In this document: positions 15,919 to 59,887 of the stretch, piece by piece
Layout of the letters: the number at the start of each line of letters is the position of its first letter
How positions within the stretch are numbered: the stretch's first letter is position 1
DNA from: Octopus bimaculoides
Lineage: Eukaryota
Assembly (NCBI RefSeq): GCF_001194135.2
Contig: NC_068982.1
Span: 186,736,346 to 186,800,345 of the forward strand
Length of the DNA: 64,000 nt
Direction: 5' to 3'
Made by a program: the position numbers and the translations under genes
The notes under the pieces: model-generated
Databases searched by the model: none
What the model was told of the DNA's origin: nothing
What the model saw: the letters and a program-made list of their open reading frames with translations, nothing else

Positions 15919-16577
<659 letters not shown>

Positions 16578-16608
16578 ATGGCTTTGTACGGAGATGCTGG
16601 CATTGTAG
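16578..16608 (+). CDS. Candidate first coding exon of the uncharacterised plus-strand gene (MALYGDAGIV + 1 nt)
   Basis: ATG (AAGAATGG context) next to the promoter, 31 nt, donor AG|GTATCC in phase 1, matching the phase of all downstream exons. No homology recognised; the link to the downstream exons is inferred. Confidence 0.4.
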
Positions 16609-20370: not shown

Positions 20371-20464
20371 CTGGAATTTCACAGATATGCATGCATCCAT
20401 CCAACCATCCAACCATCCATCTATACACACACACATAATGTACAAACGTGCATTAGGCAGTGTT

Positions 20465-36360: not shown

Positions 36361-36468
36361 CGTCTATGAATTTAATAAAAGATGTATTTCTGTTTTCTTT
36401 CGTACAATTGTCACATTATGATGATGCTGATTTTGAATACGATGGTACTCTCACAAATAAGATGGAAG
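36361..36468 (+). CDS. Candidate exon of the plus-strand gene (A-SMNLIKDVFLFSFVQLSHYDDADFEYDGTLTNKME)
   Basis: 108 nt, phase 1-1, open frame, donor AAG|GTAAAC. Acceptor tgtttaaaAG is weak, and an in-frame ATG at 36366 could be the real start. The 5' boundary is uncertain. Confidence 0.5.
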
Positions 36469-36589
36469 GTAAACCATTCTTTTCCATTATATTTCATTAA
36501 TGTACTGTCTACATTTATTTTGATAGGCATCTATGTATTCTATTCCACTCATGACTAACAATAGGATAAACCCATAATTATTTTGACTC

Positions 36590-36905
36590 CATAATGATCA
36601 CACAAACAATTACATACACACTTTTGTACATATACATGTACATACATACTTGCATGCACACACATGTGTGCATGCACACACACTCACATGCACACTCATG
36701 CACATATACACACACATGCACACACTCACACATACACATGCACACACTCATACACACAAGCATGCACACACACTCATACACACATGCACACACACTCACA
36801 CACTCCTAAAGACACACATGCACACAATCACACACACACGCACACACTCTCACACACACACACACACTCTCACACACACTCACACACACACACACACACA
36901 CACAC
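36590..36905. repeat. Compound (CA)n/(CACATG)n microsatellite
   Basis: Directly visible low-complexity tract. Confidence 0.95.
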
Positions 36906-37433
36906 CCATTCAATGCTGGAAAGGTTTTTTTTTTTTGTTGAATTTAAAAGATTTTACACTAAAACATTGCTTCTCCTTCGTTTCAATTATATGGATCGTT
37001 AGATGGAACAAAATTGTTGTGACTTCTTGTGTGGATGAAATATACCAAAAAAAAAACAGGTCACTGTTCTAAGACTGAATGATGCCTTGACGATCCCATC
37101 GGCCATCTTTGTATGAAAGCCAATAAATCGTTTTTTATTTCTGTTCTGCTTTAATGCAATGGGTTGATTGCAATAAACATCAGGTTTTTATTTAATGCAC
37201 CACTAACTCCCTGACAATGGCAAGCCAAAAGAATATGCATTATAATTCTGGACTCTGGAATGCTGAGAAATTTATGTTTAACTACAAAATTGATCCTTTC
37301 AGCAGCTGATCCCTGTCTTCCCCATTCTATCACTGTAGAACTAAGACCTGGCAATACACTGGGAAATTGTGGAAACTTCTCAGTTGATCTCTGATTTGAG
37401 TGTCAAAGTAATGGATGTTAAAGCAAAAACCTG

Positions 37434-38010
37434 CAGAGAATCATCCAGAGAAGGACCATAATGGATCATACCTGTTTTACAAGGATCATACCTGTCTTAC
37501 AAGCCTCTCTGCAACTATAACCAAATCCAGACCAGTGAAAAATCCTCAGATTGTCTTTATTAAAAGCAATAATCACTTCTTGAAATGTAACTTTTCTAAT
37601 GACAACTTTATAAAATGCGATGAATGCTTGATTTTGAAATTCCTGTCTCATGACTAGTTTGTCAATACCTTTTTAGTATCCATTCTTGCTTTGTGGAGCT
37701 CATCAATGTCCACAGTGTTCTGGAACATTTCTCATAGGCATTCCTCTAAAGTGTGCATACATTTTTGGAGGACACCATGTCTGTTTTAGTATAAATGCTT
37801 TAAAATGTCTAACAACATTTTTTTAATCATTATAATCACATCTATAAGGTATATTTTGTTTGTATCTTCCAGATGCTCATGATGAAATCTCTCCAAAAAG
37901 ACGTTTGCGCCGTATACCAGGTAATGTTATGTATTGCTAATAGCCTCTCTTTTATTTGGTTTACAACATATCACATTTATTACTAAAAAATTAGAAAAAA
38001 TCCTAACAAC
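37434..38010 (+). repeat. Segmental duplication unit, copy 1 (contains exon A); copy 2 at about 40477-41040 (contains exon B)
   Basis: 37489-37872 vs 40507-40893 differ by 4 substitutions and one poly-T length change by my alignment. Confidence 0.95.
37873..37920 (+). CDS. Duplicated-type exon A (D-AHDEISPKRRLRRIP)
   Basis: Acceptor ttgtatcttccAG, donor CAG|GTAATG, 48 nt, phase 1-1, open. Flanks are homologous to those of exons B, C and D. Confidence 0.78.
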
Positions 38011-38344
38011 TCCATCTTTCCATTAATTTATTATTTTTAAAAAAATTATCAATCTTAATTCATGAACAAGAATGTTATTGGTTAAGTCTTTCCAATGAAT
38101 GAATATTTATTTTTTTATTGCCCACAGGGGGCTAAACATAGAGGGGACAAACAAGGACAGACAAATGAGATTAAGTTGATTACATCTACCCCAGTGCATA
38201 ACTGGCACTTATTTTAATCGACCACGAAAGGATGAAAGGCAAAGTCAACCTTGGCAGAATTTGAACTCAAAACATAACAGCAGGTGAAATACAGCTAAGC
38301 ATTCCACCCAGTGTGCTAATGATTCTGCCAGCTCACCGCCCTGA

Positions 38345-40345
38345 GAGCACCAAATCAACGGGCAAAGAAAAATATACCCAGGGATAGGAGGGTACTAATG
38401 AGACGAAGAGCAAAAATCTCAAACCGTTTAAATGGACATCTAAAAGATTTCAAACGAATCTACCTCGAATACACCTTGCTTGAGATTGAAAATGCACTCA
38501 AACTTTCCCATAAAACGGAAAGGGTAGAAAAGGAAGCCAGGGCTATCAAAAACATTAAAGTGGACCCTACGGCCTTCTACAGATATGTGAAAGAACATGC
38601 TTCAGTGCGTTACAAAATAGGACCGCTGCTAGATGAAAACGGTTCACCAACTGCGGACCCCCAGAGGATCAGTGAATTACTGAATGCACAATACAAGAGT
38701 GCTTTCAGCATACCGCTGGGGAAACTACGAGTGAATGTGCCGTGTAGGGTCTTTGAGCCTGATGACACACATTGTGAAATGGCAACTATTGATAACATCA
38801 ACATAGAGGAAACTGATGTGATATCAGCCATTGAAGAGCTGAGCTTGAACTCGGCAATGGACCTTGATGGATTCCCTGCAATCCTCCTAAAGAAATGTAA
38901 AAGTGCTCTAGCTAGACTGCTTCAAATTCTTTTCCAGGATTCCCTCAGGATGGAGAAACTCCCCCAAAAACTAAAAGAGGGAATAATATGCCCTATCCAT
39001 CAGGGAGGAAGGACGGCAGAGGCTAGGAATTATAAACCTGTCTCCCTGACCTCCCACATCAATAAAGTCATGGAGCGCATTGTCAGGAAAAGACTGATTG
39101 AGTTCCTTGAGGCTAATGACCTGCTCTCTGACACCCAACATAGCTTTCGCTCAGGAAGGAGCTGTCTTACACAGCTTCTGTGACACTATGACTGGGTGCT
39201 GAAGCAATTAATGAATTGCTCAAATGTGGATGTGGTATACCTCGACTTTGCGAAGGCATTTGACAAGGTCGACCATGGAATGATGTGCCACAAAATATGG
39301 AGACTTGGCATCACCGGTAAAGTCAGAGAGTGGCTGCATGATTTCCTAAAGGACAGGAGCCAAACTGTAGCAGCCAATGGAGCTCTCTCCACAGGGACAC
39401 CAATAGTGAGTGGAGTGCCCCAGGGCACTGTGCTGTGGCCACTGCTTTTCATGGTAACTCTATCGGATATGCCATCAGTGACAGAGGCAGCCATGCTTAC
39501 CAGCTATGCTCACGACACGAAAGTCACACAGTCAGTCAAGGAAACCTCTGATACTACGCTCTTAGAGAAAGATCTAGATGCCATCCATACATGGGCTGAG
39601 GATAACAACATGCAATTCAATGCAAGTAAATTCCAGGCCCTCCGCTACCAGTTAAGTCCTGCTCAGGAATCACGACATCAGTACGTTGGACCAAGTGGAG
39701 CAACAATCCCAGAATCAAAATACGGTGCGTGATCTTGGAATAGAAATGAGCAACAATGCCTCATTTCACACACATATCAACAAAATGGTAGCAGTATCCA
39801 GAAGACTGGCCGGTTGGATTCTGAGAAATCTTCTGGACAAGGGATCAAGAAACTATGATGACTCTATGGAAGTCATTTATCCTCGGCTGACTGGACTACT
39901 GCTCTCAGCTATGGTCACTTTAGACTACAAACTACAAGGACGATAGCAGAACTTGAAGCAGTCCAACAACATTACACAAAGAAAATTGCATCAATGGAAC
40001 GACTGAGCTACTGGGACAGATTGAAAGAGCTATGACTCTGTTCCCCGGAAGGAAGGAGAGAGAGGTATGCAGTGATATATATATGGAAGGACTGGTACCA
40101 AACTTTGGAATAAAGAGCTATACCAGATTATGAATGGGACATCACTGTGCTGTCCCCAATGTGCCGACTGCTTCATTTTGGGCAAGGACGATGTACTGCA
40201 ATAGCTTGGGTTTCAAGGGCCCACAGCTGTTTAACTGTCTGCCGAAGCATCTGAGGAGCCTCCATGGAGTGGATGTAAACGTTTTCAAATGTGAACTTGA
40301 CCTTTGGCTTGCTGAGATCCCGGATGAGCCAATATCTAGGCTGTA
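38345..40345 (+). mobile_element. CR1-clade LINE, 5'-truncated ORF2 (RT), with stops and frameshifts
   Basis: NYKPVSLTSHINKVMERIV, QHSFRSGRSCLTQLL*, VYLDFAKAFDKVDHG, SGVPQGTVLWPLLF, YAHDTK. Confidence 0.93.
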
Positions 40346-40476
40346 AGATCGAACTCCATCCTTCACCAAAAGCCGCTCCGACAAAGGTGGAAAGTAGAAA
40401 GATGATCACATTGGCGGTGCTCCAGCATGGCCACAGTCATTGGACTGAAACATATAAAAGAATTTTTAAAATGTAC

Positions 40477-41040
40477 AGAAGCACCCAGTGAAGGATCATA
40501 ATGGAATACCTGTCTTACAAGCCTCCCTGCAACTATAACCAAATCCAGACCAGTGAAAAATCCTCAGATTGTCTTTATTAAAAGCAATAATCACTTCTTG
40601 AAATGTAACTTTTCTAATGACAACTTTATAAAATGCGATGAATGCTTGATTTTGAAATTCCTGTCTCATGACTAGTTTGTCAATACCTTTTTAGTATCCA
40701 TTCTTGCTTTGTGGAGCTCATCAATGTCCACAGTGTTCTGGAACATTTCTCATAGGCATTCCTCTAAAGTATGCATACATTTTTGGAGGACACCGTGTCT
40801 GTTTTAGTATAAATGCTTTAAAATGTCTAACAACATTTTTTTTTTAACCATTATAATCACATCTATAAGGTATATTTTGTTTGTATCTTCCAGAAGCTGA
40901 TGAGGAGGAGGAGGAGGAAATCGATTTAGCTAGACCTTTGGGCATTATACCAGGTAATGCTATGTATTGCTAAGTGCCTCTCTTTCGTTTAGTTTACAAC
41001 ATATCACATTTATCACTAGAGAATTTAAGAAAAACCCTGA
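40477..41040 (+). repeat. Segmental duplication unit, copy 2 (contains exon B)
   Basis: Direct sequence identity to 37434-38010. Confidence 0.95.
40894..40953 (+). CDS. Duplicated-type exon B (E-ADEEEEEEIDLARPLGIIP)
   Basis: Same acceptor sequence as exon A, donor CAG|GTAATG, 60 nt, phase 1-1. The 12-nt length difference from A is a frame-preserving GAG expansion. Confidence 0.78.
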
Positions 41041-42140
41041 CAAAGGCATCATACTATCTGCCTTTCACTCTGAGAGAGACCCTTTGTTGCCAGCAGGGGT
41101 AGGAGCTCTCTGAACTTTGCCCAGCCTAATCTTATTCTCACAGCTACGCTCTTGGAGCATCCACCTCCACTACTAACTTGGTCACCTAGATAACGGAAGC
41201 TATTTACTGTCTCTAGCTTACCCAACTGACAGTTGATGGAGTCTATTTTCTGTACATTTCCAGTGTTTATTGTACCTGCGCACCTTCCACATACAAAAGT
41301 TATTTTCCCACTTAACCTTGCCCTGGTATTGCTGTACCTCTTATACGTTCATAGCTTACACCAGGTGCATAGAAAAGGCATAGGTATGCCTTTTCTATGG
41401 ATCAAGCAGGGCCATCTACCTGAAGAGATTCGTGATTTGTCTGCCTTCCTACTAACTAAGACTTTGGTTTTTGCTAGGTTAACTCTAAAGCCATTCAATT
41501 CTAGACCTTGTTCCCATACTTGGAACTTCTTCTCTAGTTCTGGTAGTGATTCAGCTATAAAAACAAGATTGTCAGCATAGAGAAGTTCCTAGGGGCAGCC
41601 TGTCTTGAATTCCTCTGTTTTTGCTTGGAGGACTATGATTAACAAAAGGGGGCTGGGAACCGATCCTTGGAAAACCCCTATTTGTACTCTGAATTCCTTG
41701 CCGTACTTGCTGCCAACTCTCACCTTACTGATAGCGTCCCTATACATGGCTTCTACAGCTCTGACCAACCATTCATTTATCCCTAGTTTTTGCATTGATC
41801 ACCAGATAAGGGATCAGGGGACCCTGTCAAAGGTTTTCTCCAAGTCAACAAAAGCCCAGTACAAAGGTTTATCTTAGGCTATATATTTCTCCTACAGCTA
41901 CCTTACCAAAAATATAGCATCAGTGGTACTTCTCCCTGACACAAAACCAAACTGCATCTCATCTAGACTAACTCTCTTCCTAATTAGTTGGGCTTCTCTG
42001 TAACTTTCATCTCCTGATTCAACAATTTGATACACCTGTAATTATTTCTGTCTAAGGCGTCACCTTTACCTTTGTAGCAGTTGATTATGGTGCTGCTACA
42101 CCAGCCACTGGGTATGACTACTTTGTGAGTCACACCCTGA
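41040..42140 (-). mobile_element. RTE LINE RT fragment inserted between exons B and C
   Basis: MQKLGINEWLVRAVEAMYRDAISKVRVG...GVFQGSVPSPLLLIIVLQ. Confidence 0.9.
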
Positions 42141-42384
42141 TTTACAATACAGGTGACTATATGAATATGTAATATATATTTAGTTATTTTGGTGGGGTTG
42201 TTTGTGTGTGTGTGTGTATTTGTGTGACTTTCAACATATAGACAAGACAGACTTTAAAAAAAGACCTTCACTTTAACAATTTATGTAGGCATGTGCATGA
42301 TTAACAAATGTTTTTACCAGCAGTGTAGCATCAAGCAACAACCTAGTTATATCTAAAAAATATATTTTATTTATATTTTACCAG

Positions 42385-42453
42385 TGCTTGACTATGGACC
42401 TCGCATGGATGCAATTAAGAGAAAACCAGCTAAGAAATATCCCACGATGCAAG
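42385..42453 (+). CDS. Duplicated-type exon C (V-LDYGPRMDAIKRKPAKKYPTMQ)
   Basis: Acceptor tatattttaccAG, donor AAG|GTAATG followed by the same ttatgtattgctaagtgcctctc motif, 69 nt, phase 1-1, open. Confidence 0.75.
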
Positions 42454-43145
42454 GTAATGTTATGTATTGCTAAGTGCCTCTCTTTCGTTTAGTTTACATG
42501 TCACATTTATCACTAGAGAATTAGAGAAATTCTATTAACTTATTATTTAAAAAAAATTTATCTGTCGTAATTCATGAACAAGACTGTTATAGGCATAGGA
42601 GTAGCTGTGTGGAAAGTAGCTTGCTTACCAACTACATGGTTCCGGGTTCAGTCCCATTGCATGGCACGTTGGGCAAGTGTCTTCTACTATAGCCCCGTGC
42701 TGATCAAAGCCTTGTGAATGGATTTGGTAGACGGAAACTGAAAGAAGCCCGTCGTATATATGTATATGTATGTGTATGTATATGTTTGTGTGTCTGTGTT
42801 TGTCCCCGCAACATCGCTTGACAATCGATGCTGGTGTGTTTACATCCCTGTAACTTAGCGGTTCGGCATAAGAGACCGATAGAATAAGTACTAGGCTTAC
42901 AAAGAATAAGTCCTGGGGTTGATTTGCTCGATTAAAGGCGGTGCTCCAGCATGGCCACAGTCAAATGACTGAAACAAGTAAAAGAGTTACGTGTTTCCAA
43001 TGAACCAAACACTGGTTCCAAGCATTTTTGATGTTGAGGGTAACAAGTAACAAAGTATTTTTCTTGGCAGTGTTTAATTCTTTTGCTGATAAACATAAAT
43101 GAATGGCATACACACAACAACATACCTATATACATTCAAACAAAC

Positions 43146-44580
43146 TGTTATATCTCACGTTCGGATGGTGTGCCTTCACCAATATCATACCTCTACCTAA
43201 CTACCGAACTCTCACTTCCAACGACACGACTCAACAGAACTTGATGTCTAGACTACCAACAGCTCCAGCTCGCTCTACTCAACGCTTCTCGTCTAGCTAT
43301 CACGTCCACTATTCATACGTATTGGACTAGCCTACTTATCGTCTGGGGGTATCCACATAACACCTCCCCCTTTTGAGAGTTTTTTTTTTCTAAACCTGAA
43401 TTTATCAATTTTATTTCCTTGGTGAGAAACTGGTGTATTTTTTTCTCTTAGCGTTAATCTCCATCATTTCTGTAGGTTTTCTTTTCCTGTTTGACCTGTG
43501 TCAGTTCTGCTTCTGCTTGTGGTTCTGGGACCTCAAACAAATCATACCGTATATCCATTGGTTCCTCTCGCCTCTCTTGATTTTTGGTATATCTTTTTTT
43601 TAATTGGTTTATATGCCTTCTGTGTTCATATTTTGGTCCTTTTACCATGTACATTACGTTACCCAGATGTCCAGTTAAACATCCTTGTTCTCAGTCATGT
43701 TTTCCGTTTCTATATATTCAAAAATACACTTCATCACCCATGTTAAAAAATTTCGTTTTTCTTCCCGACCTGCATTTCATCTGTATAAACCCAATTTTAC
43801 CACACTTAAAACAGGTTTTATCTTTAAAGGGGCAATCTTTCCTCAAATGTCGGTCTCCGCAACCATAGCACTGTTTTGAATTGATATATTTTCTTCTGTC
43901 TGTGCTTTTTTACACATTTATACATTATTACTATTATTGTCTTCTATTTTTCTTGTATCATCTTCGAAGGTTGATTATTTGTTGGCATTCCTCAGCCACT
44001 TTCTGCAAGGTTAGTTTCACATCTTGATTCAGCTTTTACTCTTTTACTTGTTTCAGTCATTTGACTGTGGCCATGCTGGAGCACCGCCTTTAGTCGAGCA
44101 AATCGACCTCAGGACTTATTCTTTGTAAGCCTACTACTTATTCTATTGGTCTCTTTTGCCGAACCGCTAAGTTACGGGGACATAAACACACCAACATTGG
44201 TTGTCAAGCGATGGTGGAGGGACAAACACAGACACACAAACAAACACACACACATATATAAATACATATATACGATGGGCTTCTTTCAGTTTCCGTCTAC
44301 CAAATCCACTCACAAAGCTTTGGTCGGCCCAAGGCTATAGTAGAAGACACTTGCCCAACGTGCCATGCAGTGGGACTGAACTCGGAACCATGTGGTTGGT
44401 AAGCAAGCTTCTTACCACACAGCCACTCCTGCGCCTGATAATATTCTTTTTCTAATTTCTGCATCTTCCATTGCCACCAGCCCTTTTACGAATATTAGGC
44501 AGTTGAACATATCTGGCGTTAATTCTTCCAGCTTAAACCTTTCACAAGCCTTATTAACTATACGGTTATGTCGTGTTTGA
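43146..44580 (-). mobile_element. Internally deleted Ty3/Gypsy element: gag remnant (split by a SINE at 44035-44435), integrase C-terminus, PPT and 217-bp 3' LTR (43146-43362)
   Basis: LTR termini TGTTAT...ATAACA, preceded by PPT AAAAGGGGGAGG. Gag VNKACERFKLEELTPDMFNCLIFVKGL and knuckles CYGCGDRHLRKDC / CFKCGKIGFIQMKC. IN tail GDEVYF..YRNGK...GNVMYMV...RRHINQLK. Confidence 0.85.
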
Positions 44581-44819
44581 GGAGAAGACCCATCAAGCTA
44601 AGTAAAATCAAAGTCATGGCAGATACCGGTGTCACACAAATGGCACCTGTACCGCTGGCACACAAAAGTACCCATTATGCTCTCGGAGTGGTTGGCATTA
44701 GGAAGGGCATCCAGCCATAGAAGCCATGCCAAATCAGACTGGAGTCTGACGCAGCCTTCCAGCTTGCCAGCCCTGGTCAAACCGTCCCAACCCATGCCAG
44801 CATGGACAACGGACGCTAA

Positions 44820-44854
<35 letters not shown>

Positions 44855-46070
44855 TGGAATTCTCCATTTTTATATTGCAGAGCTTGAAAAACTTGATAAA
44901 AAGCCGCTTCCTAAGGGAGTAAGTATTCTCTTAAGTAACTTATCTGCTTATACTGTTTTCTAGGGCTCTCTTTTGAAGAAGATAACAATCCACTCTGATT
45001 CAGATGCCAATCTGCTTAGGTGGACTTAGCCATTGGTTCATGCCTCCAGAATGCACTTCCACTTTCTTTCAATCACATTGTCATACGTTGCGTTTTGCTT
45101 GTACTTTTTTTCGTTCATTTTGGAAATGTTTGTATTGTTACACACATACATGTTAACACTATCACATTCATGCACCATACCATGCCTTTCTTGTTTGTTT
45201 TCCATCCTCCCTCAGTAAGACCCTAGATCCGTTACGTATACATAGAGAAAGTTGTCCTTCCTCTACAACGCGCCACATGCCTCACTCTTGCTCCTGCACA
45301 TTTCAAGCTGTTTAATACCTCATGCATTGGCTGAAATATCCAGCACTGCCTTAAGCATTGGTATATTCAACACTGTATTTGTAATCACTGCATTAGCATA
45401 CTACCTCAGCCATGAGCCCTTTTGCACACACGCACACGCAACTCTATTATGCGTCTATTATCTTGTTTTTCAACACGTTTGTGCCAGCTCACTCCTTTCC
45501 CGACTCGATGCACATCAGATATTCACTTGTTCTGTGCTCATGCCTAGACATAATTTCCCCCTGTTAGACCTTTGTTTGGTCATGTAATGAATGGAGAAAA
45601 TTACCTGTCTTGTGCATCACCCCCGCATGCTACACTGCCGTTCTTGCTAACCCCAGCAATTACCCACAACAACAGCACCAAACACATTTCGCTTCTGAAA
45701 GACCTTCATGGCATTTCATACACTGCAATCCTGCAGGAAGATCTTCGATATCATGGATTGAGAATACACTCATTCGATCACCTGAGATCATTTTACAGTG
45801 AATTTTGATACGTGCACCTGCACTTGTGTATACGCCCTCACGCATACGCGCGCACTAGCTCATTTCTGCTGTACTGCTCAGTCACTGACTGCACACATTT
45901 TGGCATGCAAAGCGACACCGCTATTCAGACTCACTTGAATAAATATCTGTCCTGTATACACTTCAATGGTCCTCTCTCCTCATATGCAAAACTTTTCCTC
46001 AGTCATGCATTTCTTTCTCTTCTTCAGTCGTTTGTTTCCTTTTCTTAGAACCTCTCTGGAGCGGGAGTGA

Positions 46071-47225
46071 TGTAGTAGCTTCATGCAGGTTTGGTGTGGA
46101 TTCAATCCTCAATCACCAAATTTCAATTAACACTTCAACAGCACTTTTCTCACAGTAAAACAATAGTTTTTCTGTGAGTGACAGCAGTTACATTTGCCAG
46201 ATGCCTTCGCTAAGCAAAATAATGTCTTTGCCACTTGACCTTTCTAACCTCTTCTAGTCCACCAAAAGCAAGAATAGAGATAACAGACCACTAATGAAAT
46301 CTATTGTTCTAGCTGGTTTTGGATAGTTATAAAAACTAGAATTTTCTAAGGCAAAATCAGTGTGTGAGAGCAACCATCAGTTAGTGAACAGAGACCAATT
46401 AGAGTCATAGCCACAAGCAGGTAGCCACTAAAGACAAACGGCCAGAGGGAGAAAGAAGGTTACAACCAGCCAACTATGACACACAATGACCTCGACTCTA
46501 TAATTTTTACTGTCTCTCTTTTCTCTTACAACATCATTCTATCACTATCTATGGTTAAGCACGTATAGGAAAGTGGTTATACACCATTAGGTGTACACCC
46601 GCTTTCCTATATTAAATCTGTAGAAACAACGGAACGCAGATTCTGAACTATCAACACAACAATATTTATTTACAGAGGAAATTGGCAGCACTTCGCCCTT
46701 TGGTTGCTGAGACGCCGTCAATGATGTTGAGAGGTTATTTGTCTAGCTCCAGAGTTGGAATGTTGGAAAGAGACTGTCTCCAGAGTTGGAATGTTGGAGA
46801 CACTGCTTGACACGTCCATGTTCATGGCCGGCCAGCCGAGAAAGAGCATGAATTGAGCGGGAACGTTTAGATGTTGAATTCCACGCATGCACATGGGACT
46901 CTTCCAGTGTTCCTTCCGGAACTATTCCCTGCGCATGCGTAGATGAAAACGCAGTAATGGCGACTGTACCTTGGCACCAAATGACGTCACTACACACGTA
47001 TACATACATACCGGATGAAATTAACTCTTTTTACCTCGCATGCTTTTCCATTTACTAATTATACATACCAACCTGTCGTGGTTTTGGATATATACAAAGT
47101 AACAATAAATAAATATTTCTTTACAACTTCGATCATTCTTCTTTCATTTTGCACATCTGCAACAGCAACACTCGTTACAGTCGCTAACTGCCAACTCCAA
47201 CATAATATCATAATACCAGCTGTCA
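46071..47225 (+). mobile_element. Putative LTR preceded by a PPT and followed by a tRNA-Trp-like PBS; the upstream 44900-46070 may be its internal 3' region
   Basis: GGAGCGGGAGTGA|TGTAGT at 46058-46076; AATAAA near 47104; TGGTGACCCTCGAC at 47230-47243. An alternative end is CGTTACA at 47267. Confidence 0.55.
46619..46994 (-). mobile_element. Nested solo LTR, 376 bp
   Basis: Perfect termini TGTAG...CTACA, AATAAA on the minus strand near 46667, and a GCGCATGCG motif as in the 19263 LTR. No 4-6 bp TSD directly at the ends. Confidence 0.6.
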
Positions 47226-47289
47226 GAATTGGTGACCCTCGACTGCAATGAAGAACTAACCGTTACATATATATAGCTCAAAGCTACAA

Positions 47290-48050
47290 CCTCTGTTAAT
47301 AACAAAGAGCCTCTCCTTCAGAATGGAAGACAGATTGTATGATGCTTGGGTACAAACAGCCATGCTACATGGCAGTGAGACATGGAGCATGACTACTGAG
47401 GACATGTGAAGGTTTGAAAGAAATGAAGCCAGCATGCTCCTCTGAATGTGCAGTGTCAGTGTGTATGTACAACAGAGTGCTAGTGGTTTGGGAGAAAAAC
47501 TGTGTATATGAAGCCTCAGATGTAGTGTGCAAGAGAGAAAACAGCACTGGTATAGCCATGTAATGCATATGGATGAGGATAGTTGTGAAAAGAAGTGCCA
47601 ATCTTTAAGTGTGGATGGAATGTGTGGTAGACCCAGGAAGACATGGAAGGAAGTAGTGAGAAAGAATCTTCAGACATTAGCTCTCATGGAGGGTACGACA
47701 AGGGACTGAGATTTCCGGTGGTTTGCTGTGCTTAAGAAGACATGTCAACCTAAGTAAAATCATAGTTGTCCTCACATACAGGTATGTCCCCTACATCCCT
47801 CTCCAACTGAGCAAGCCTAGTCTTGTGGGCTTGTGGGTATTGGTACCACATAAAAAGCACCTGTGGTGGTTCTGTGTAAATGCACACAGTACACTCCGTA
47901 AAATGGTTGGCATTGAGAAGGGCATCCAGCCATAGAAACCATGCCAAAACTGACTGGAAGCTGGTGCAGCTCTTCAGCTGGCCGGCTCTTGTCAAACTGT
48001 CCGATCCATGCCAGCATGGAAAATGGACACTAAATAATAATGATGATGAT
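47290..48050 (+). mobile_element. RTE LINE 3' fragment with tail
   Basis: Aligns with 21360-22270 (MLHGSET, HVMHMDEDS, GRPRKTW). Confidence 0.85.
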
Positions 48051-48911
48051 GTATTATAATAGTCCTTCAGTTACCTCCTGTTTAAGTCCGGTCAACAAAA
48101 TAAAACTGTTGCTTAACAAAATAAATAAATCTCAGGGTCACCACTGAATATATAAACATGGTTCAGACTAGAAGTAATTGAATCAGTAATTTTTACAGTC
48201 AGGTTTTCTAATGACTAATTGTCTGTTTGCAGAATAGCACAAATTATTCTGTTGAGGTGGAGACAGGAAAATATCTATGCAAAACAGTTTTTATCGTCGA
48301 CATCATCATCAGTTTAAACAAACTAACCACACGGAATCAATATAAAGTCTGTCCTGATTGACATCTTATAAATTAAGAAATGAAAGCCACAAATCATGTT
48401 CTGTGGAATTGTCATTGCATTATTTTACCAACAAGGTCAAGGCAGCGGCCTGACAGAACCGTTAGCATGCCGGACCAAATACCTAATGGCATTTCATGTG
48501 ATTTTATGTTCTGAGTTCAAATTCTGCCAAGGTCGACTTTGCCTTTCATCCTTTCAAAGTCGATAAAAAAAGTACCAGTTCAACACTGGACTCGATGTAA
48601 TCGACTCATTCCCTCCCCAACAATTGCTGGCCTTGTGACTAAATTTGAAACCATTATTTTACCAACAAGGCAGCAAGCTGACAGAACCATTAGCGTACCA
48701 GGCGAAATGCTTAGCAGCATTTCATCTGACATTATGTTCTGGGTTCAAATTCTGCTGTGGCTGACTCTGCTTTTCATTCTTTCAGAGTTGATAAAATAAG
48801 TACCAGTTATGCACTGGGATCAATGTAATCAACTTACCCCTACCCTCACTGAAATTACTGGTCTTGGGCCAAAAATTGAAACCAATATTAAACCAAATTC
48901 TATCAAGATCC

Positions 48912-48962
<51 letters not shown>

Positions 48963-49514
48963 GTTTAACATCCATTTTCCAAGCTCGCATGGGTTGGACG
49001 GTTTGACTGAGGTCTGGAAAGCCAGCGGCTGCACCAGACTCCAATCTGATGCAGCAATGTTTCTATAGCTGGGTGCCCTTCCTAATGCCAACCACTCCGA
49101 GAGTGTAGTGGGTGCTTTTTATGTGCCACCAACACAGGAGCCAGTCATGTGAGCCTAACATCAATCATGTTCAGATAGTGCTTTTTACGAGCCACCGGCA
49201 TGGGACCCAGTCAGCAGGTACTGGCATCAGCCACGTTCGGATGATGCTTTTTATGTGCCACTGGAATGGGAGCCAGTCAGCGGATACTGGCATCAACCAT
49301 GTTTGGATGATGCATTTTATGGGCCACCGGAAAGGGAGCCAGTTAGATGGCACTGGCCACAGCTACGATTTTGGTTTTACTTGACTCAACATATCTTCTC
49401 CAGCATATATCGCCTGACGCATCCAGGGTACTCCTATCTATCTATATATCTATATATATGTGTGTGTGTGTGTGTATTTTTTATATTTATGGAGGAAATT
49501 AAAAGAAAATGATA

Positions 49515-49705
49515 CAGGATGGGCCAAAAGTCACAAAGGAATTTGAAATTTTAATAAATTTTAAAAATTACTTGAGATGTGATTTTTCACACCTAGCATG
49601 CATTCATTTCCTATATAAACTGTATATAATGTTATGGTAAATTTAAAACAAAGAAAAAGGAGTTATTGAATTCTGAGATCCCTTTGTGACTTTTGACCCT
49701 TTCTG
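49515..49705. mobile_element. Tc1/mariner-type MITE, 191 bp
   Basis: Imperfect TIRs CAGGATGGGCCAAAAGTCACAAAGG / CCTTTGTGACTTTTGACCCTTTCTG with TA at both ends. Confidence 0.7.
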
Positions 49706-50940
49706 TATATGACTAAACGTTGTTGTAATTTCTTCGAACATTCTTTAACTAGAAGTAGCGACCCTGAAATTTTGAACAAGCAGCCAAGTTTCCGATTAAA
49801 CAACTATGAAGTATTTTAAATTTATGAACCGGAGGCTTTTGAACACATTTTTCTAATTACACTAATACTTTGTGAGAATATCACCACATTCCTTTTCTTT
49901 TTTTTTTTTTTACTACAGTCACAAAATTTTCAGTAACTTCAGGTTTTACTGTTTATTACAATAGCAAAACTAAGTCATTTTATTCTGTCTGCCATCAAAT
50001 TAAAACTGTTTTTCACATGGACTGCCAAAACCAATCTAGTTCACTGTTTCCCACAACTTGAAGTCATTTACACAGTCACTAGACACTACACATGCCTATT
50101 TTTCTGTTCCTGATTTACATTCTGGTCACAACAATGTATAAGCTGTTACTTTACTCATTTCATGAGCTAAATGCTAGACTTGGTCTTAGCCGCCACAGAA
50201 CTCTAGAAAGCAGACATTCTAAAAAGGAGGAGCTGGACAATTTGTAGATGGTCAATAGTTGTTTATAACATGGCTGTGTGGGAAGAAACTTGCTTCTAAA
50301 CCAGTCCCACTGTGTGGCACCTCAGGCAAGTGTCTTCTACTAAAGCTGTGCAAGTGGGTTTGGTAGATGAAAAGTGAAAGAAGACCAACATGTGTGTGTG
50401 TATGTGTGTATGTGTGTGTGTGTATGTGTGTGTGTGTGTGTTTATCACCCACCATAGCTTGACAACTGGTGTTGGTGTGGTCCATCAAAACTTAGTGATT
50501 CGTCAAAACTTAGTGGTTCATCAAAAGAGACCAATAGAATAAGAACTGGGCTTTAAAAAAGATTCTGGGCTCAATTCGCTCGGCTAAAAACTTTTCAAGA
50601 TGGTGCCCTAGTGGGGCCACAGTTTAATGATTGAAACAAGCAAAAGATAGACCATAGCTGAATTATAACCTGGCTCTTAAAATGAAAACCTTATCTTATG
50701 TGTATTTCAGTTTCGTAATTTATCNNNNNNNNNNNNNNNNNNNNNNNNNNNNNNNNNNNNNNNNNNNNNNNNNNNNNNNNNNNNNNNNNNNNNNNNNNNN
50801 NNNNNNNNNNNNNNNNNNNNNNNNNNATAAAGTTGCCAGCTCCTGATAAACGATTGAGCATTTCTACTCAAGTTAAGATACAAGGTAAACCATAAATTTA
50901 CATTGTTTACATTAATATACTGTCTACATTTTCTTTGTGG

Positions 50941-51320
50941 AGGTGCAATGGCTCAGTGGTTAGGGCAGCGAACTCACAGTCATAGGGTCGTGGTTTTGAT
51001 TCCCAAACCAGACATTGTGAGTGTTTACTGAGTGAAAACACTGAAAGCTCCGCGAGGCTCCGGCAGGAGTTGGTGGTGAACCCTGCTGTACTCTTTCACT
51101 ACAACTTTCTCTCACTCTTTCTCCCTGTTTCTGTTGTACCTGTAATTCAAAGGCGCCAGCCTTGTCACACTCTGTGTCACTCTGAATCTCCCCAAGAACT
51201 ACATTAAGGGTGCACATGTCTGTGGAGTACTCTGCCACTTGCATGTTAATTTCACGAGCAGGCTGTTCGGTTGATCGGATCATCTGAAACCCTCATTGTC
51301 GTAACCAACGGAGTGCCATA
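50941..51320 (+). mobile_element. tRNA-headed SINE family D (related copies at 2880-3180(-), 12600-12745(-), 31600-31782(-))
   Basis: A-box TGGCTCAGTGG in the head; body ccagccttgtcacactctg...gttgatcggatc is the reverse complement of 2880-3050. Confidence 0.75.
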
Positions 51321-52719: not shown

Positions 52720-53240
52720 GATCTTAGGGTTTGGGGAAAATCTGGGCAAGTAAAAGCATTGGTTTGAAAATAAAACTGCATCTATACAGCACCATCGTGT
52801 TACCTAAAGCACTGTATGCCAGTGAAACTTGGAAAGTAACATCAACAATATCTACGAAACTGGATGTATTCCATCAGAGGTGCTTGCGGAAAATATTGAA
52901 GATCTCCTACTGCGACCACATCACAAATGCTGCAGTCCTCCAGCGAGCACAGTCAAGTAGGTTGCAAGACATCGTGGCAGAGAGAAGAATGAGACTAGCC
53001 AGACACATTTTCCCGCATGCCAGACCAACGGCACACCAAAGCAGCATTTAGATGGGAACCATCTGGCGGAAAGAGAAAGAGAGGAAGACTAAAAACAACA
53101 TGGCGCAGATCGTTCAAAGCAGACATAGCAGTAATAAACAGAAAATGGGAAAACATTGAGAGAGAGGCTGACGATAGAGATCAGTGGAGATTGTTGTCTG
53201 CCCAATGCGCCACCAGACGCAGGATGGACTAAGGAACTAA
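52720..53240 (+). mobile_element. RTE-clade LINE 3' fragment, a different subfamily from the dominant RTE
   Basis: LYASETWKVT...KLDVFHQRCLRKILKISYCDHITN; GKRKRGRLKTTWRR. Confidence 0.85.
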
Positions 53241-53710
53241 GGAATAGATATTTAACCAATTGACTAGTAATAAAGGAGCTAAGTTGAACTGGTGTGTGTG
53301 TGTGTTAATTGTATTGGCGTAATGACTCTTCCAAGATATATTATAATTATATTTAAGAAGTGGTGGTCATTGAAAGTCGATGGTATCTGTAGTAGCAGGA
53401 GACCCAAGAAGACGTAGGATGAAGTGGTGAGGACTGATCTCAGAATGTTGGGGCTGATGTCGGAATTGACAATGGACCAAGATGTCTGGCAATGTGAGGT
53501 TCTAGAGAAGGCCTGCCCATGTCAGTAAAGCTGATTTCTAGAAACTGTGTGTGTCCCACCCATATGTAACAATAAAACTTTTCACTCACCCTACCAAAAC
53601 AAATCAAACTGCATCTCTTCTCTTCCTCATATTTCCTCTTTCATACCCTGTGATTATCTTCCACTTCCCAATCCTGTCCTCTCTGCTCTGCTTATTACAT
53701 CATTGTTTTC

Positions 53711-53921
53711 CCCACCCCTTCTGTATACCCAGGTTCTCACCGGTCACTGCATTCCCCACCCCTTCTGTATACCCAGGTTCTCACCGGTCACTGCATNNNN
53801 NNNNNNGGTTCTCACCGGTCACTGCATTCCCCACCCCTTCTGTATACCCAGGTTCTCACCGGTCACTGCATTCCCCACCCCTTCTGTATACCCAGCTTCT
53901 CACCGGTCACTGCATTCCCCA
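53711..53921. repeat. 44-bp minisatellite (cccaccccttctgtatacccaggttctcaccggtcactgcattc) spanning a gap
   Basis: At least 4.5 near-identical units visible; gap at 53797-53806. Confidence 0.9.
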
Positions 53922-54749
53922 CCCCCACTCTCTACTCACAGTATACCATGACTTCCATACCTCCAGGTTATACCCTGACACTTGCCACCGTTTACCTCTT
54001 TCTTCTTTCACTCTATCATCCCATTTATATCCTAATTGCTGTACCTTGTGGGTATGCCCTGGTGCTTCACCATCATCTCTCTCCTGCTCTCTCTTGCACT
54101 CTTGCTCTCTTCTTCTTCTCTCTCTCTCTCTTTCTTTTGCTCTTCTCTCCAGCTGGGTAACCATGTATCTCCTCTACAGCAGCACACTCATTTTCTGTCT
54201 TCATTCTCCACCCCCTCTCTCTCTGTCGCCAGGTAACCATGTTCCTCCTCTACAGCAAGACATCTGTTTCTGTCTCTCTTTCTCACTTTAACCTTTCATC
54301 ATCTGGCACAAGATCACCTCCTCTAATGCCCCCTCCCCTCTCAAAGGTTTTTTTTTGTTTTGCAAGTTACTTGGTGGCCCTACCAATGCTGATATCATGT
54401 AAAAAGCATCCAGTCCACACTGTAAAGTGGTTGGCATTTTGGAAAGGCACCCCCCTGTAAAAACCTTGCCAAAACTGACCTCGCCTGTGCTGGTGCCATG
54501 TAAAAGCATTCAGTCAACTCTGCAAGGTGATTGGTATTAGGAAGGGCATCCAGCTGTAAAAACCATGCCAGACCAGACAGAGAAGTCTGATGCAGTTTTC
54601 TGCCTTGCCAGCTCCTGTCAAACCAGCCGACCCATGCCAGCATAGAAGACGGACATTAAACGATGAGGGTAATCATGATATATTCATATTTAAATGTCTA
54701 ATTATAATTTAATCATATCTACATTAATGCTTCTTTGATGTCTTTTCAG

Positions 54750-54911
54750 AGTTTCTAAATTCTATAAAAAATTTCGAGGAAGAGTTAGAATCAGTAGAAG
54801 CTGAAAGTAGGGGGATTTTGAGTCAAAATAAATTGCACACCTCTGATCCAGCAATTGGTGAAGGTGAGGTTTCCACTGCGAGCCTAATGAATAGGACACA
54901 GCGTATACCAG
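54750..54911 (+). CDS. Duplicated-type exon D (E-FLNSIKNFEEELESVEAESRGILSQNKLHTSDPAIGEGEVSTASLMNRTQRIP)
   Basis: Acceptor tcttttcAG, 162 nt, phase 1-1, open. Ends CGTATACCAG like exon A; donor flank gtaataccatgtattgataactgcctccc is homologous to A-C. Confidence 0.75.
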
Positions 54912-56479
54912 GTAATACCATGTATTGATAACTGCCTCCCTTTTGTTTGGCTTGCAACATTTTTATAGCTAGTTTATACATAGAACTATTGGCATAGGTA
55001 AATTAAAAGCACTATCCTTCATCAGCTTTCTATTTCTTCAACAAACCCCTAACAAATGTGAAGGAATATTAGAGTTGACATAATTTGGCTGATGCAAGGC
55101 GGCGAACTGCCAGAATCGTTGATACGCCGGACAAAATGCTTAGAGGCATTTCATCCGGCTTTACATTCTGAATTCAAATTCCGCTCAGGTTGCATTTGCC
55201 TTTCATCTTTTCGGGGTCAATAAACTAAAGAACCAACTGAGCACTGAGGCCGATGTGATCTCCCAAAATGCCAGGCCTTATTCCTATAACAGAAAGAAAT
55301 ATTTCAGTTTTCTTTAAAACGGCTCAATCAGTTAGATTAGACACCACAAGCACTTTAAATGTAACACCCACTTTTTAAAAATGTTTAAGTTAATTAACAC
55401 TAATTAGTAATAAGCTATACTTGCTAATTATTTATTCATAGAGTAACAACAAAGGTATCAACTTTCAACATTATTATTATTATCATTATTATTATTATTA
55501 TTATTATTGTTATTATTATTATTATTATTATTAAGGTGCTGAGCTGGCAGAAATGTTAGCATGCTGGATGTTTGGAGTGTCAGAGGAAATACAAGTTCAC
55601 ATGTAGTCCCCAGTCACATGCATACACTGTTTGGAAAAGTGTAATCTGTAAGGAGCTCATTTTGCCATTGATTGTTGACCATTGCAGAGGATTCGCTGAC
55701 CAAGTAACCACCAATTATCTGAGCAGACATAGCCTGGGTTTGAAGCAGGTGGTACTCATACCATTTAACCCGTAGATAGGACCCTGGTCAGTGCTACTAG
55801 TCCAGGACAGAGTAGACCTGGGAACAATAATGGCTAGGAGATGGTTCCACCTTCCTCAAAACCCTGGAATTCCTCTACCAAGGCCCCTCTACCAAGGCCC
55901 CTCTACCAAGGCGCCTCTACCAAGGCCCCTCTACCAGATGCAGTTCAAATGCTTACCCAGACACCATCACTATTTGTCATCCTGTAAGACTTCCAAAAGA
56001 GTTTGTTGTATAATATCCTAATTAATGTTAGTTTGTAAAGAATGTTTATCAATTAAATAGGTAAATAACATGGTTTGGGCCTCACAGAAGCAAAGTGGCT
56101 GAGCTCATTTTGAGCGTTGGGCCTCACAGTGGCACAATGGCTAAGTTCCTTTTGAGTGTTGGACCTCACAGAGGCAATGACCAGGACCTTTGGCATTATG
56201 TCATGCTTGAGGAGATCTATCTAGCCGAGCAAAACCACAGTTGTGGCAGATACCAGTGTCATGCAAATGGCACCCGTGCCAGTGGAATATAAAAGCACCC
56301 AGTACACTATTGGAGTGATTGGCATTAGGAAGGGCATCCAGCCATAGGAGATCATGCCAAGTCTGACTGGAGTCTGGTGCAGCCTTCCAGCATGCCAGCC
56401 CGGTCAAACTGTCCAACCCATGCCAGCATGGACAACGAATGCTTAATGATGATGATGATGATGATGAAATAATCTGTGC

Positions 56480-57170
56480 AATAAACCCAAAATAATACGC
56501 TGAAATGGTGGAAACTTTGGAATTACCAAACGGTAAAAAACTGAAAATGATGTTGGAAGGGAGACCCCCAAAATGTTACGGATGCGGTGAAAGAGGGTAC
56601 CTGAGATGGAAATGCCTCAGAGCAGCAGTGGAAATGGTGGAAGAGAGTGTTCAGGAAGATATGGTGGTGGGAAAAAATCAGAAGCAGAGAACAGAACAGG
56701 ATGGGGATTTTGCAGAGGTAAAACCCAGGAAAAGAGAGAAAAGAAAGTCACCGACGACAGTGGAAGTGAAGAAGTGTAAAGGAATTGGAAGAAGAAACTC
56801 AACCCACGACGAGAAATGGAGAAAATTTACCAGTGGAAGTACCAGCAAAGGAATTAAAAGTACAGAGTCAGTCAGACCAGAAAAGAGACAACCCAGAATT
56901 ACGGAAACCTAAAGCCATAGAAACACAAACGAAACACGTAGAGTTGCAGTCAAACGAACACACAGACACACAAATACACGAACACACAGACACACAAATA
57001 CACGAACACACAGACTTAGAGATGAAAATACAAGAACACACAAAACAGCAGGAAAATAGAAACAAAAAGAGACAACAAGAAAGACACAAACAAAAAGAAA
57101 AATTATAGAGTGAAGGAATCCCCAACTTAAAAGGAGTGTAGAATGGAAAGACATTGGGAGAGACAGAAGT
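56480..57170 (+). mobile_element. LINE ORF1 remnant with zinc knuckle (Tx1/L1-like); possible 3' end at about 57460-57905
   Basis: LKMMLEGRPPKCYGCGERGYLRWKC followed by a low-complexity basic region; the 3' segment ends tgtaataaagaa. Confidence 0.6.
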
Positions 57171-59250
57171 GGTAAGTCATCATCATCGTTTAACGTCCGT
57201 TTTCCATGCTGGCATGGGTTGGACGATTTGACTGAGGACTGGTGAACTAGATGGCTACACCAGCTCCAATCTGATTTGGCAGAGTTTCTACAGCTGGATG
57301 CCCTTCCTACTGCCAACCACTTCGAGAGTGTAGTGGGTGCTTTTACGTGCCACCCGCACGAAGGCCAGTCAGGCAGTACTGGCAACGGCCACGCTCAAAT
57401 GGTGTATTTTACATGCCACCTGCACAGGAGCCAGTCCAGCGGCTCTGGCATAATTTTGTAAAGACTGTAACCGAGAACAAATTATTTGGACTTCCATGGA
57501 AAAAAAAAAGAAAAAAACAAGTAAATTTGGAAACTGCTGAATAAACAGGTTTTCTAAAAGTTTTTTTTGTTAAATGCTGTAATAAACATTTGGGTGACTT
57601 TTAGTTTAAAAAGGAAAAGAAATATGTAAGTCCTGTATGAACATTTGTTTAAAAGGTTTATAATTGTAGGGTAAAAGTGAAGAGGGATATTGCGGTTCTG
57701 CCTCGGAGCGAGGCTAGATGTTATGTAAAATGTAAAGGTTTACAGAAAAGGACTCCATGGCTTCATCTCGCAGTGGGAGTGAGATGGCTGTCTCATTTGC
57801 ATTGTAATTTTATTCATTTCACAATCATCTTTCATATGTTTTATGTTCCCGCATGTCTTTGTATGTCCCCTCTGTAATTAGGCCTTGTGCCTGTAATAAA
57901 GAATTAACCTCTAGCCGAACAATTATTCTGTTCTGATGAAAAGAAATAACCCAGAAATTGCGATACACAGATATTGTCTTGAGCTGAGTGGGGGTGCTAG
58001 ATTCCCTTGTTCGAAAATATAAGGACACAGATCGTGTCGTATAGCCAGCTGGAGACGATGTCTCCTGGGGCTAAATAACAGCAACATTTGTCCTAAACCA
58101 GGACTGCCATGTTATGTTTACAAACAATTTTTACAGTTTCATATGCTACAACCTTTTGAAAATGTAATGTGAAAGCAGCAAAGTGTATTTCTATATTTTC
58201 TGTGCATTTTCAACTTCATTTCTTATATATATATATATATATGTGTCTCTTGCAAGGTACTTAGTGACTCTGTCAGTGCAGGTGCCACTTAAAAAGCATC
58301 CAGTCCACACTGTAAAGTGGTTGGCATTTGGAAGGGCATCCAACTGTAAAAACCTTGCCAAAACTGACCTCACCTGTGCTTGTGCCAAATAAAAAGCACA
58401 AGGTCCACTCTGCTGAGCAGTTGGTGTTAGGAAGGGCATCCAGCTGTAAAGCTCCTGCCAAAACAGTCACAGGAGTCTGGTGCTGGTTTCTGCCTGGTCA
58501 GCTCCTGTCAAACTGTCCAACCCATGCCAGCGTGGAAGGTAGACGTTAAAGGATGATGATGATGAGGATGATGATTTTTGTCATCATCATCGTCGTCGTC
58601 GTTTAATGTCTGCTTTCCATGCTGGCATGGGTTGGACGGTTTAACTGAGGGTTGGTGAGCCAGAAGGCTGCACCATCATCATTATCATCATCATCGTTTA
58701 ACGTCCGCCTTCCATGCTAGCATGGGTTGGACAATTTGACTGAGGACTGGCAAGCCAGAAGGCTGCACCAGGCTCCAATCTAATCTGGCAGTTTCTACAG
58801 CTGGATGGCCTTCCTAACGCCAACCATTCCAAGAGTGTAGTGGGTGCTTTTAAGTGCCACCGGCACAATGGCCAGTCAGGCAGTACTGGCAACGGCCATG
58901 CTCAAAATGGTGTATTTTACGTGCCAGTTGCACAGGAGCCAGTCTAGCGGCACTGGCAACGCCCTCACTCGAATGTTTTTTCACGTACTACCGGCACAAG
59001 TGCCAGTAAGGCGATGCTGGTAACGATCACACTCAAATGGTACTATTTACATGCCACCAGCACGGAAGCCAGACAGCTGTTCTGGCAATGATCACGCTCA
59101 GACGGTGCTCTTAGTGCTCCACTGGTACAGGTGCCATCACTATTTCGATTTCACTTGCCCCAACAGGTCTTCGCAAGCCGAGTTTAGTGTCCAATGAAGG
59201 AGAGGTTAGCATGGGTGCCAGTTGTCGAATTTGGTTCGATTTCACTATTT

Positions 59251-59660
59251 NNNNNNNNNNNNNNNNNNNNNNNNNNNNNNNNNNNNNNNNNNNNNNNNNN
59301 NNNNNNNNNNNNNNNNNNNNNNNNNNNNNNNNNNNNNNNNNNNNNNNNNNNNNNNNNNNNNNNNNNNNNNNNNNNNNNNNNNNNNNNNNNNNNNNNNNNN
59401 NNNNNNNNNNNNNNNNNNNNNNNNNNNNNNNNNNNNNNNNNNNNNNNNNNNNNNNNNNNNNNNNNNNNNNNNNNNNNNNNNNNNNNNNNNNNNNNNNNNN
59501 NNNNNNNNNNNNNNNNNNNNNNNNNNNNNNNNNNNNNNNNNNNNNNNNNNNNNNNNNNNNNNNNNNNNNNNNNNNNNNNNNNNNNNNNNNNNNNNNNNNN
59601 NNNNNNNNNNNNNNNNNNNNNNNNNNNNNNNNNNNNNNNNNNNNNNNNNNNNNNNNNNNN
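59251..59660. other. Assembly gap; other gaps at 3527-3536, 32584-32593, 35024-35033, 50725-50826, 53797-53806, 60766-61541
   Basis: N runs. Confidence 1.
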
Positions 59661-59698
<38 letters not shown>

Positions 59699-59794
59699 TT
59701 TCCATTATTGTAAAATGTGTTAAATGTTAAATATCTAATAATAATTTATTTTTTACTTTATATCTAAACATTTCTTTTGTTGATATACTTCCAG

Positions 59795-59887
59795 AATTTA
59801 GAGAAGAGTTGTTTTTAGGAGAAGAAGAATATGAAGAAAGCCTGACTGATATCGAAAAGCAGCCAGCTGTGCAGTATGAATCATCTG
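59795..59887 (+). CDS. Exon E (E-FREELFLGEEEYEESLTDIEKQPAVQYESS)
   Basis: Acceptor ttgttgatatacttccAG, donor CTG|GTAATG, 93 nt, phase 1-1, open, acidic like B and D. Flank homology to A-D is weak. Confidence 0.68.

Follow-up and report, generated by a model that had tools for sequence, protein, structure and literature searches.

A partly annotated Octopus gene of short, phase-matched exons, probably enlarged by tandem duplication of exon blocks

What kind of gene is made of short exons whose intron flanks are alike and whose coding parts hardly resemble one another? The question is raised by a 64,000-nucleotide (nt) stretch of the Octopus bimaculoides genome (assembly GCF_001194135.2, contig NC_068982.1, positions 186,736,346 to 186,800,345, forward strand; hereafter the window). 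A preliminary description had reported six exons between 36361 and 59887 (here e1 to e6) as an unannotated gene, and had suggested that they form a combinatorial diversification system, loosely like Dscam cassettes or toxin and reproductive-protein genes. We propose that these exons belong to one protein-coding gene on the plus strand, running from window position 16578 to beyond 64000, which is restricted to Octopus in the databases searched and has grown by tandem duplication of exon blocks. We place the probability of this reading at roughly 0.72. What is new is an uncharacterised, partly annotated gene; a new diversification machinery does not appear to be present.

The orthologue in O. 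vulgaris and the exon inventory

The one-gene reading is carried by annotation and orthology. The spliced product of the six exons is 98% identical over e2 to e4 to XP_052821754.1 (uncharacterized protein LOC128247056 of O. bimaculoides), the coding range of which corresponds exactly to window positions 16578-46810 on CM046602.1; the gene had therefore been annotated already, in part only. An exhaustive HMMER search recovered CAI9716918.1 from Octopus vulgaris (E 1e-20), which has a longer isoform, CAI9716917.1. These two proteins are collinear with the window and join homologues of exon 1 (the exon with the start codon), e1, e3, e4, C1, eX, e5, e6, C2, eX2 and e5', the exons that had not been reported before being described below. 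Because a single O. vulgaris coding sequence joins homologues of e1, e3, e4, e5 and e6 in the same order, the earlier view of one gene with tandemly duplicated exons, kept flanks and strongly diverged coding parts is supported. The O. vulgaris annotation was built with Iso-Seq and RNA sequencing, and isoforms were added via PASA (PMC10700109), which implies transcript support for the two isoforms; their sole difference is one retained intron. We mapped every exon and its splice sites in the fetched O. vulgaris locus (coordinate system L002). Protein searches found no relatives outside the two Octopus species, and a literature search on the accessions found no mention of them. The donor flank common to eX and e1 had prompted the idea of two tandem paralogous genes (exon 1 with e2 to e4, and eX with e5 and e6), which we rejected, as a class C exon connects the two halves in the O. 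vulgaris orthologue.

The basic observations of the preliminary description stand. All six peptides are located on the plus strand where they had been placed, and the exons, bounded by AG and GT, measure 108, 48, 60, 69, 162 and 93 nt, all multiples of 3. They contain no stop codon in the phase-1 frame. A second frame is open in e2 and e4 but in none of the other four, and reading frames other than phase 1 hold up to 7 stops. For seven random segments of the window with such lengths, the joint chance of all lacking a stop in a single given frame is about 1e-4. Exons e2, e3 and e5 end in ATACCAG, and the donor flank GTAATGYTATGTATTGCTAA occurs four times at three or fewer mismatches, against 0.01 expected; a profile of this flank additionally recovers e6 in a scan of the window (E 1e-9). 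The profiles of donor and acceptor flanks match only the five exons e2 to e6 in the 64 kb. Since they match nothing else, the units are not a dispersed repeat within the window. All six reported exons are real; two further ones had been overlooked, at 44881-44918 (phase 1 to 0) and from an assembly gap to 50827-50884 (phase 0 to 1). With these two exons the statement that all exons are of phase 1-1 holds for one class and fails for the gene, and the orthologue has no direct junction between e4 and e5.

Exon 1 (16578-16608, plus strand, as are all exons described here) carries the start codon and encodes MALYGDAGIV; it is part of XP_052821754.1. In O. vulgaris the orthologous first exon encodes MACCGATSA, and the downstream flanks of the two are 93-94% identical. 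In O. bimaculoides exon 1 possesses two adjacent donors, ATT/GTAGGT (phase 0, the O. vulgaris position) and GTAG/GTATCC (phase 1, the NCBI model), the slash marking the splice site. The next exon, e1 (36361-36468), has the donor flank GTAAACCAT..TACTGTCTACATTT and matches the class A donor profile at 36458-36536 (E 4e-22). In e1, homology to the O. vulgaris exon is confined to the 3' part, 36411-36468 (SHYDDADFEYDGTLTNKME). The 5' half of e1, read as VFLFSFVQL, is the translation of TTTCTGTTTTCTTTC, a former polypyrimidine tract which aligns with the orthologous tract, and with the acceptor, of the O. vulgaris intron. The acceptor, cag/TCC in O. vulgaris, reads ttg/TCA in O. bimaculoides, and the NCBI model skips e1. 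A CA-rich microsatellite lies shortly 3' of e1 (36600-36900).

Three exons of phase 1-1 follow, all of them in XP_052821754.1: e2 (37873-37920; (D)AHDEISPKRRLRRIP), which is a duplicate of the e3 unit found in O. bimaculoides only, e3 (40894-40953; (E)ADEEEEEEIDLARPLGIIP), the orthologue of O. vulgaris DDDDDAEFDLMRPLGSIP, and e4 (42385-42453; (V)LDYGPRMDAIKRKPAKKYPTMQ), the orthologue of O. vulgaris VLRREPRPKPSMDIVKRK.... Exon C1 (44881-44918; (E)LEKLDKKPLPKG, donor flank GTAAGTATTCTCTTAAGTAAC) is likewise in the NCBI model. Its O. vulgaris orthologue is DPEDIAAMLPRIPKG, and the flanks of the two agree at 92-94% of positions. In both species one copy of a short interspersed element (SINE) ends immediately 5' of C1. 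The NCBI model closes with a terminal coding exon, RKLAALRP...GDTA and a stop (46676-46810), situated in a segment of 3.7 kb (45900-49649) which the O. vulgaris locus lacks and which also holds several SINE copies; this exon is probably either a species-specific alternative or a spurious 3' end.

The 3' part of eX (50827-50884; IKLPAPDKRLSISTQVKIQ) matches the class A donor profile (E 2e-21), shares 15 of 19 residues with O. vulgaris IDLPASDKRLSISTQLEIQ, and has a donor flank homologous to that of e1. Its acceptor and 5' part are covered by an assembly gap (50725-50826), homology to O. vulgaris ending at about 49912 and restarting at 50827 in mid-exon. As the acceptor is lost in this gap, the NCBI model has probably been truncated by it. 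Further downstream lie e5 (54750-54911; (E)FLNSIKNFEEELESVEAES...RTQRIP), which matches its O. vulgaris counterpart at 29 of 53 residues (tblastn E 6e-10), and e6 (59795-59887; (E)FREELFLGEEEYEESLTDIEKQPAVQYESS), the orthologue of O. vulgaris EFKEELFLGDKDYEES.... After e6, homology to O. vulgaris runs to 60336, and the window ends at 64000, a point that falls about 735 nt short of C2, the next exon of the orthologue; the gene therefore continues beyond the window, as had been anticipated. The last annotated exon in O. vulgaris, e5' (L002 45610-45790), has an in-frame TGA, after which 17 more codons (KNARKERTAERLVLLE..) are open up to GTAATAT at the usual class B donor position. It looks like a class B exon that gained a stop.

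These exons fall into three classes. Class A (e1, eX and eX2) runs from phase 0 to 1 and has the donor flank given above for e1; class B (e2 to e6 and e5') runs from phase 1 to 1, with the donor flank GTAATG.TATGTATTG..GCCTCTC; class C (C1 and C2) runs from phase 1 to 0, with the donor flank GTAAGTATTCTC (also given as GTAAGTATTC). In profile scans the flanks of class A and of class C are each common to their own members, as those of class B are common to its five exons in the window. The order in the window is exon 1, A (e1), B (e2), B (e3), B (e4), C1, A (eX), B (e5), B (e6), and the orthologue goes on with C2, A, B. The array is therefore not a uniform symmetric one: three exon classes recur in tandem as A-B-B-C blocks, forming a higher-order repeat. 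With A passing from 0 to 1, B from 1 to 1 and C from 1 to 0, the phases chain from block to block, and spliced products are open; compatible phases of this kind allow the reading frame to survive tandem duplication. Adjacent exons and their intron flanks are alike, as seen in the class B flanks and in the 538 bp that the e2 and e3 units have in common. The copies are also used together in the annotated models, XP_052821754.1 containing e2, e3, e4 and C1, and CAI9716917 containing e3, e4, C1, eX, e5, e6, C2, eX2 and e5'.

We propose the following course of events for the growth of the gene. Blocks of a class A exon, one or two class B exons and a class C exon would be repeated, units being added through unequal crossing-over between homologous intron flanks. 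The likeness of the flanks may be kept by the constraint of splicing together with local gene conversion, and splicing would be constitutive and not combinatorial. The most likely origin is in partial duplications within the 5' region of the Cep57 locus, the promoter region beside FAM76 presumably being put to use.

Divergence of the exons, the e2 unit and the protein product

Comparison of the two species shows how unequally the parts of this gene have changed. Between O. bimaculoides and O. vulgaris the exons are 77.3% identical, compared with 89.4% over 10.1 kb of their own introns (p 2e-15), a divergence about twice as fast in the exons. Identity of the flanks is put at 84-92%, flanks of 36-80 nt being mostly 88-97% identical. 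Amino-acid identity ranges from 43 to 79% per exon. Nevertheless, the exons contain no stop codon in either species, and the five differences in exon length (6, 12, 6, 3 and 15 nt) are all multiples of 3. The Nei-Gojobori method over 171 codons, in alignments that are short and rich in insertions and deletions (indels), gave a non-synonymous divergence (dN) of 0.285, a synonymous divergence (dS) of 0.236 and a dN/dS of 1.2. In contrast, the first coding exon of the neighbouring minus-strand gene, which we take to be FAM76-like, is identical between the species at 27 of 27 residues. Our reading is that selection holds the frame and the splice signals of the array, with no detectable constraint on residues, so that the coding parts change as fast as introns or faster. 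Positive selection on the exons is possible.

One step of growth can be followed in the e2 unit. The unit of intron, exon and intron at 37488-38009 pairs with 40506-41043, and the two copies are identical at 381 of 385 positions of the upstream intron, at 34 of 48 positions of the exon, which also has a 12-nt in-frame indel, and at 76 of 89 positions downstream. O. vulgaris has a single copy of the intron which precedes both e2 and e3; e2 therefore arose in the O. bimaculoides lineage. All codon differences between e2 and e3 alter the amino acid, and the in-frame indel is taken as a deletion in e2. When O. vulgaris is taken as outgroup in a three-way parsimony comparison, the e2 branch shows 9 changes in 48 exon positions and 4 in 432 flank positions (p 2.5e-7). 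The flanks of e3 are a mosaic, the upstream one being 99% identical to that of e2 and the downstream one 94% identical to that of e4, the latter indicating gene conversion between units. The continuity of downstream with upstream flanks gave no local alignment of z above 3 that would mark a short ancestral tandem unit. Tentatively, exons that have just been duplicated might change in a burst that does not extend to their flanks, an idea to which we give a low probability; it would reflect either positive selection for new modules or a patch converted from an unseen paralogue outside the window.

The product of the gene is acidic (isoelectric point 4.6, 22% Asp plus Glu) and, in its O. bimaculoides version, has no cysteine. 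Searches of Pfam and PDB with it gave no match, in agreement with the earlier remark that no domain is recognised. AlphaFold2 models it as mostly disordered, with a mean predicted local distance difference test score (pLDDT) of 55 and a single confident helix, residues 105-142, across the eX-e5 junction. We would expect an acidic protein (pI about 4.6) that is disordered over most of its length and forms a short amphipathic helix wherever an A and a B exon meet. One further match, to P0003, a repeat protein of 2086 residues on a Joint Genome Institute (JGI) metagenome contig, reached E 6e-9; it is confined to one much-repeated short motif, IPVLDYGPxxDAI against VPVVEYSPVLNAL. The motif ALQSVPVVEYSPVLNALQPED, present there in many copies, resembles GIIPVLDYGPRMDAIKRK across the e3-e4 junction. 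With the O. vulgaris orthologue the match falls to E 0.45, and because it is so much weaker there the likeness is probably due to chance; we regard P0003 as an unproven relative.

The FAM76-Cep57 neighbourhood and the alternative readings

Exon 1 lies head-to-head with the FAM76-like gene (window <6578-16131, minus strand; 525 residues in the NCBI call), at a distance of 447 bp, a spacing which suggests that the two have a bidirectional promoter. On the other side of the array, in O. vulgaris, a gene on the same strand carries the Pfam domain Cep57_CLD (L002 48798-55722), and human CEP57 and FAM76B have been reported as one locus (PMC6442001). Within the range of this Cep57-like gene O. vulgaris has a fourth A-B pair that is unannotated, A0 at L002 51849-51918 and B0 at 53424-53597. 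Its donor flanks are homologous to those of the array, BLASTP gives E 6e-5 across the A-B junction, and A0 opens in phase 0 with an ATG. This setting favours, among the rivals, the one that survives best: the exons could be a 5' extension of Cep57, or its alternative 5' exons, transcribed from an ancestral promoter common to FAM76 and Cep57, and open and in frame only because they stand upstream of an essential Cep57 body. The array beginning 447 bp from the FAM76-like start, the Cep57_CLD gene coming next on the same strand, the shared human locus, the fourth A-B pair with its ATG, and a frame kept without conservation of sequence would all fit this explanation. However, the in-frame stop of O. 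vulgaris e5' comes before the ancestral donor position, the long-read-based annotation of that species holds two separate genes, and the annotated Cep57-like product of 540 residues lacks the A0 and B0 peptides, no annotated protein containing the fourth pair having been found. A resemblance of class B exons to the start of Cep57_CLD receives no support from Pfam: searches with P0004, P0001, the spliced window product and four A-B peptides brought up neither Cep57_CLD nor Cep57_MT_bd at any E up to 10. With neither a Cep57_CLD match nor a protein that includes the fourth pair, the link of the array to Cep57 is positional only, and we consider an extension of Cep57 unlikely. The array thus resembles Cep57 in its place, on the same strand beside FAM76 and with a further A-B pair inside the Cep57-like range in O. 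vulgaris, and differs from it in the absence of a Cep57_CLD match from its peptides.

Clearly less probable is that the exons are pseudo-exons, that is, non-functional leftovers of duplication which are still spliced by virtue of intact flanks and are strung into open reading frames (ORFs) by prediction programs. The dN/dS of about 1.2, the missing domain and the lack of homologues beyond Octopus would be expected of such remains, as would the region of the start codon, which differs between the models of the two species, the loss of the e1 acceptor in O. bimaculoides, and a short NCBI model that ends in species-specific sequence. Against them stand a nucleotide divergence of about 23% and five indels, all multiples of 3, that have brought neither a stop nor a frameshift, longer exons that are open in the coding frame only, and splice flanks that have changed less than intron sequence at large.

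The least probable reading is the combinatorial diversification first suggested. Many protein variants would then arise from symmetric exons that are left out or selected in varying sets, in the manner of Dscam cassettes or toxin genes. In its favour, any one of the five class B exons could be skipped with no frameshift, the NCBI model does omit e1, and the exons are highly diverged between conserved flanks. Against it, neighbouring units are included together in the annotations (e2, e3 and e4 by NCBI; e3 with e4 and e5 with e6 in O. vulgaris), a retained intron is the only annotated difference between isoforms, the asymmetric A and C exons can be used only as pairs, the shortest unit has 48 nt and the longest 174 nt, all pairings of donor and acceptor flanks (80-90 nt) give z -1.9 to +2.1 against shuffles and so no docking- or selector-like complementarity, and symmetry of phase is a mere precondition for a tandem exon duplication to survive (PMC9013439). 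The co-inclusion of units and the absence of complementarity between flanks leave combinatorial splicing unsupported.

The array can be compared with better-known systems. In exon 6 of Dscam, mutually exclusive exons are chosen by competing RNA structures (PMC1431710, PMC6071210). The octopus array is similar in that tandem homologous exons each stand beside conserved intronic elements, and differs in that its units are co-included in annotated mRNAs, that their lengths (48, 60, 69, 162 and 93 nt, with B0 at 174 nt in O. vulgaris) have a more than 3-fold spread, and that class B peptides align at their ends only. The octopus exons outdiverge introns both between paralogous units and between species. 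Exons that evolve faster than introns are known from the phospholipase A2 (PLA2) genes of snake venom and from the toxin genes of cone snails. The octopus gene, in contrast, lacks an evident signal peptide, a framework of cysteines and any known toxin fold, its dN/dS is only about 1.2, and its synonymous divergence is raised too. A loose likeness to toxin and reproductive-protein genes had been suggested; no toxin-like or secreted features hold up. Neither annotated N-terminus (MALYGDAGIV or MACCGATSA) is hydrophobic, and e1 is ruled out as a signal-peptide exon, its hydrophobic VFLFSFVQL being the translated polypyrimidine tract. The PEVK region of titin, with its short symmetric exons, is an example of tandem exon duplication, and genes of this kind offer the closest likeness: exon and flanks are copied in tandem, and the product is repetitive, charged and weakly constrained. 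Tandem exon duplication is known to enlarge genes and to yield proteins that are internally repetitive and often disordered (PMC9013439). The octopus gene differs from these in its unit, a block of three classes (0-1, 1-1 and 1-0), in being found only in Octopus in the databases searched, and in exons that outpace introns.

Several points weigh against the reading of one gene grown by duplication of exon blocks. A dN/dS near 1 is equally expected from decaying sequence, and dS exceeds the divergence of the introns, an excess that may stem from misalignment of exons which are short and rich in indels. That eX, e5 and e6 are joined in O. bimaculoides rests on orthology; the acceptor of eX lies inside a gap, the acceptor lost from e1 is used in O. 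vulgaris, and the NCBI model stops at 46810, with a stop codon before eX. As regards the proposed origin, the B peptides have no Cep57_CLD match and the fourth A-B pair is missing from annotated proteins.

Assembly, repeats and significance of the locus

With a G+C content of 41%, the window contains seven runs of N and abundant SINE-like repeats of about 200 bp. None of the six reported exons is interrupted by a gap, and across three gaps the order and strand of the exons match the O. vulgaris protein and locus. Besides the gap at eX, one of 10 N (53797-53806) lies within an intronic tandem repeat, a 97-nt duplication standing on either side of it (region 53700-53915), and one of 410 N (59251-59660) is intronic, 134 nt 5' of e6. 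Beyond e6, an intronic block at 60166-61931 is inverted relative to O. vulgaris (L002 38763-39667), with a 776-N gap (60766-61541) at a TA-rich microsatellite midway in it; the block may be a genuine small inversion or may have been misassembled. The SINEs, which are tRNA-derived, number dozens of copies on both strands (for instance 1091-1309, 57177-57450 and 63698-63890). Fragments of intronic reverse transcriptase ORFs of the long interspersed element (LINE) type, together with one gag-like CCHC ORF, are found at 38398-39732, which sits between e2 and e3, and at 61918-63191, 19063-20752 and 56505-56912.

The results of the current study correct and extend two automatic annotations, one of which, in O. 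bimaculoides, ends in species-specific sequence and the other of which, in O. vulgaris, is merely 'hypothetical'. The locus provides a clear example of gene growth by duplication of phase-matched exon blocks. As one unit arose after the split of the two species, steps of this growth can be dated from two congeneric genomes. The combination of kept splice flanks and frame with coding parts that are unconstrained or accelerated makes the gene useful for the study of how young disordered proteins evolve. If positive selection were indeed behind the changes confined to new exons, the locus would be a natural case of rapid module invention via exon duplication, in a young gene born 5' of Cep57. The finding also bears on how the conserved FAM76/Cep57 neighbourhood may acquire a new gene.

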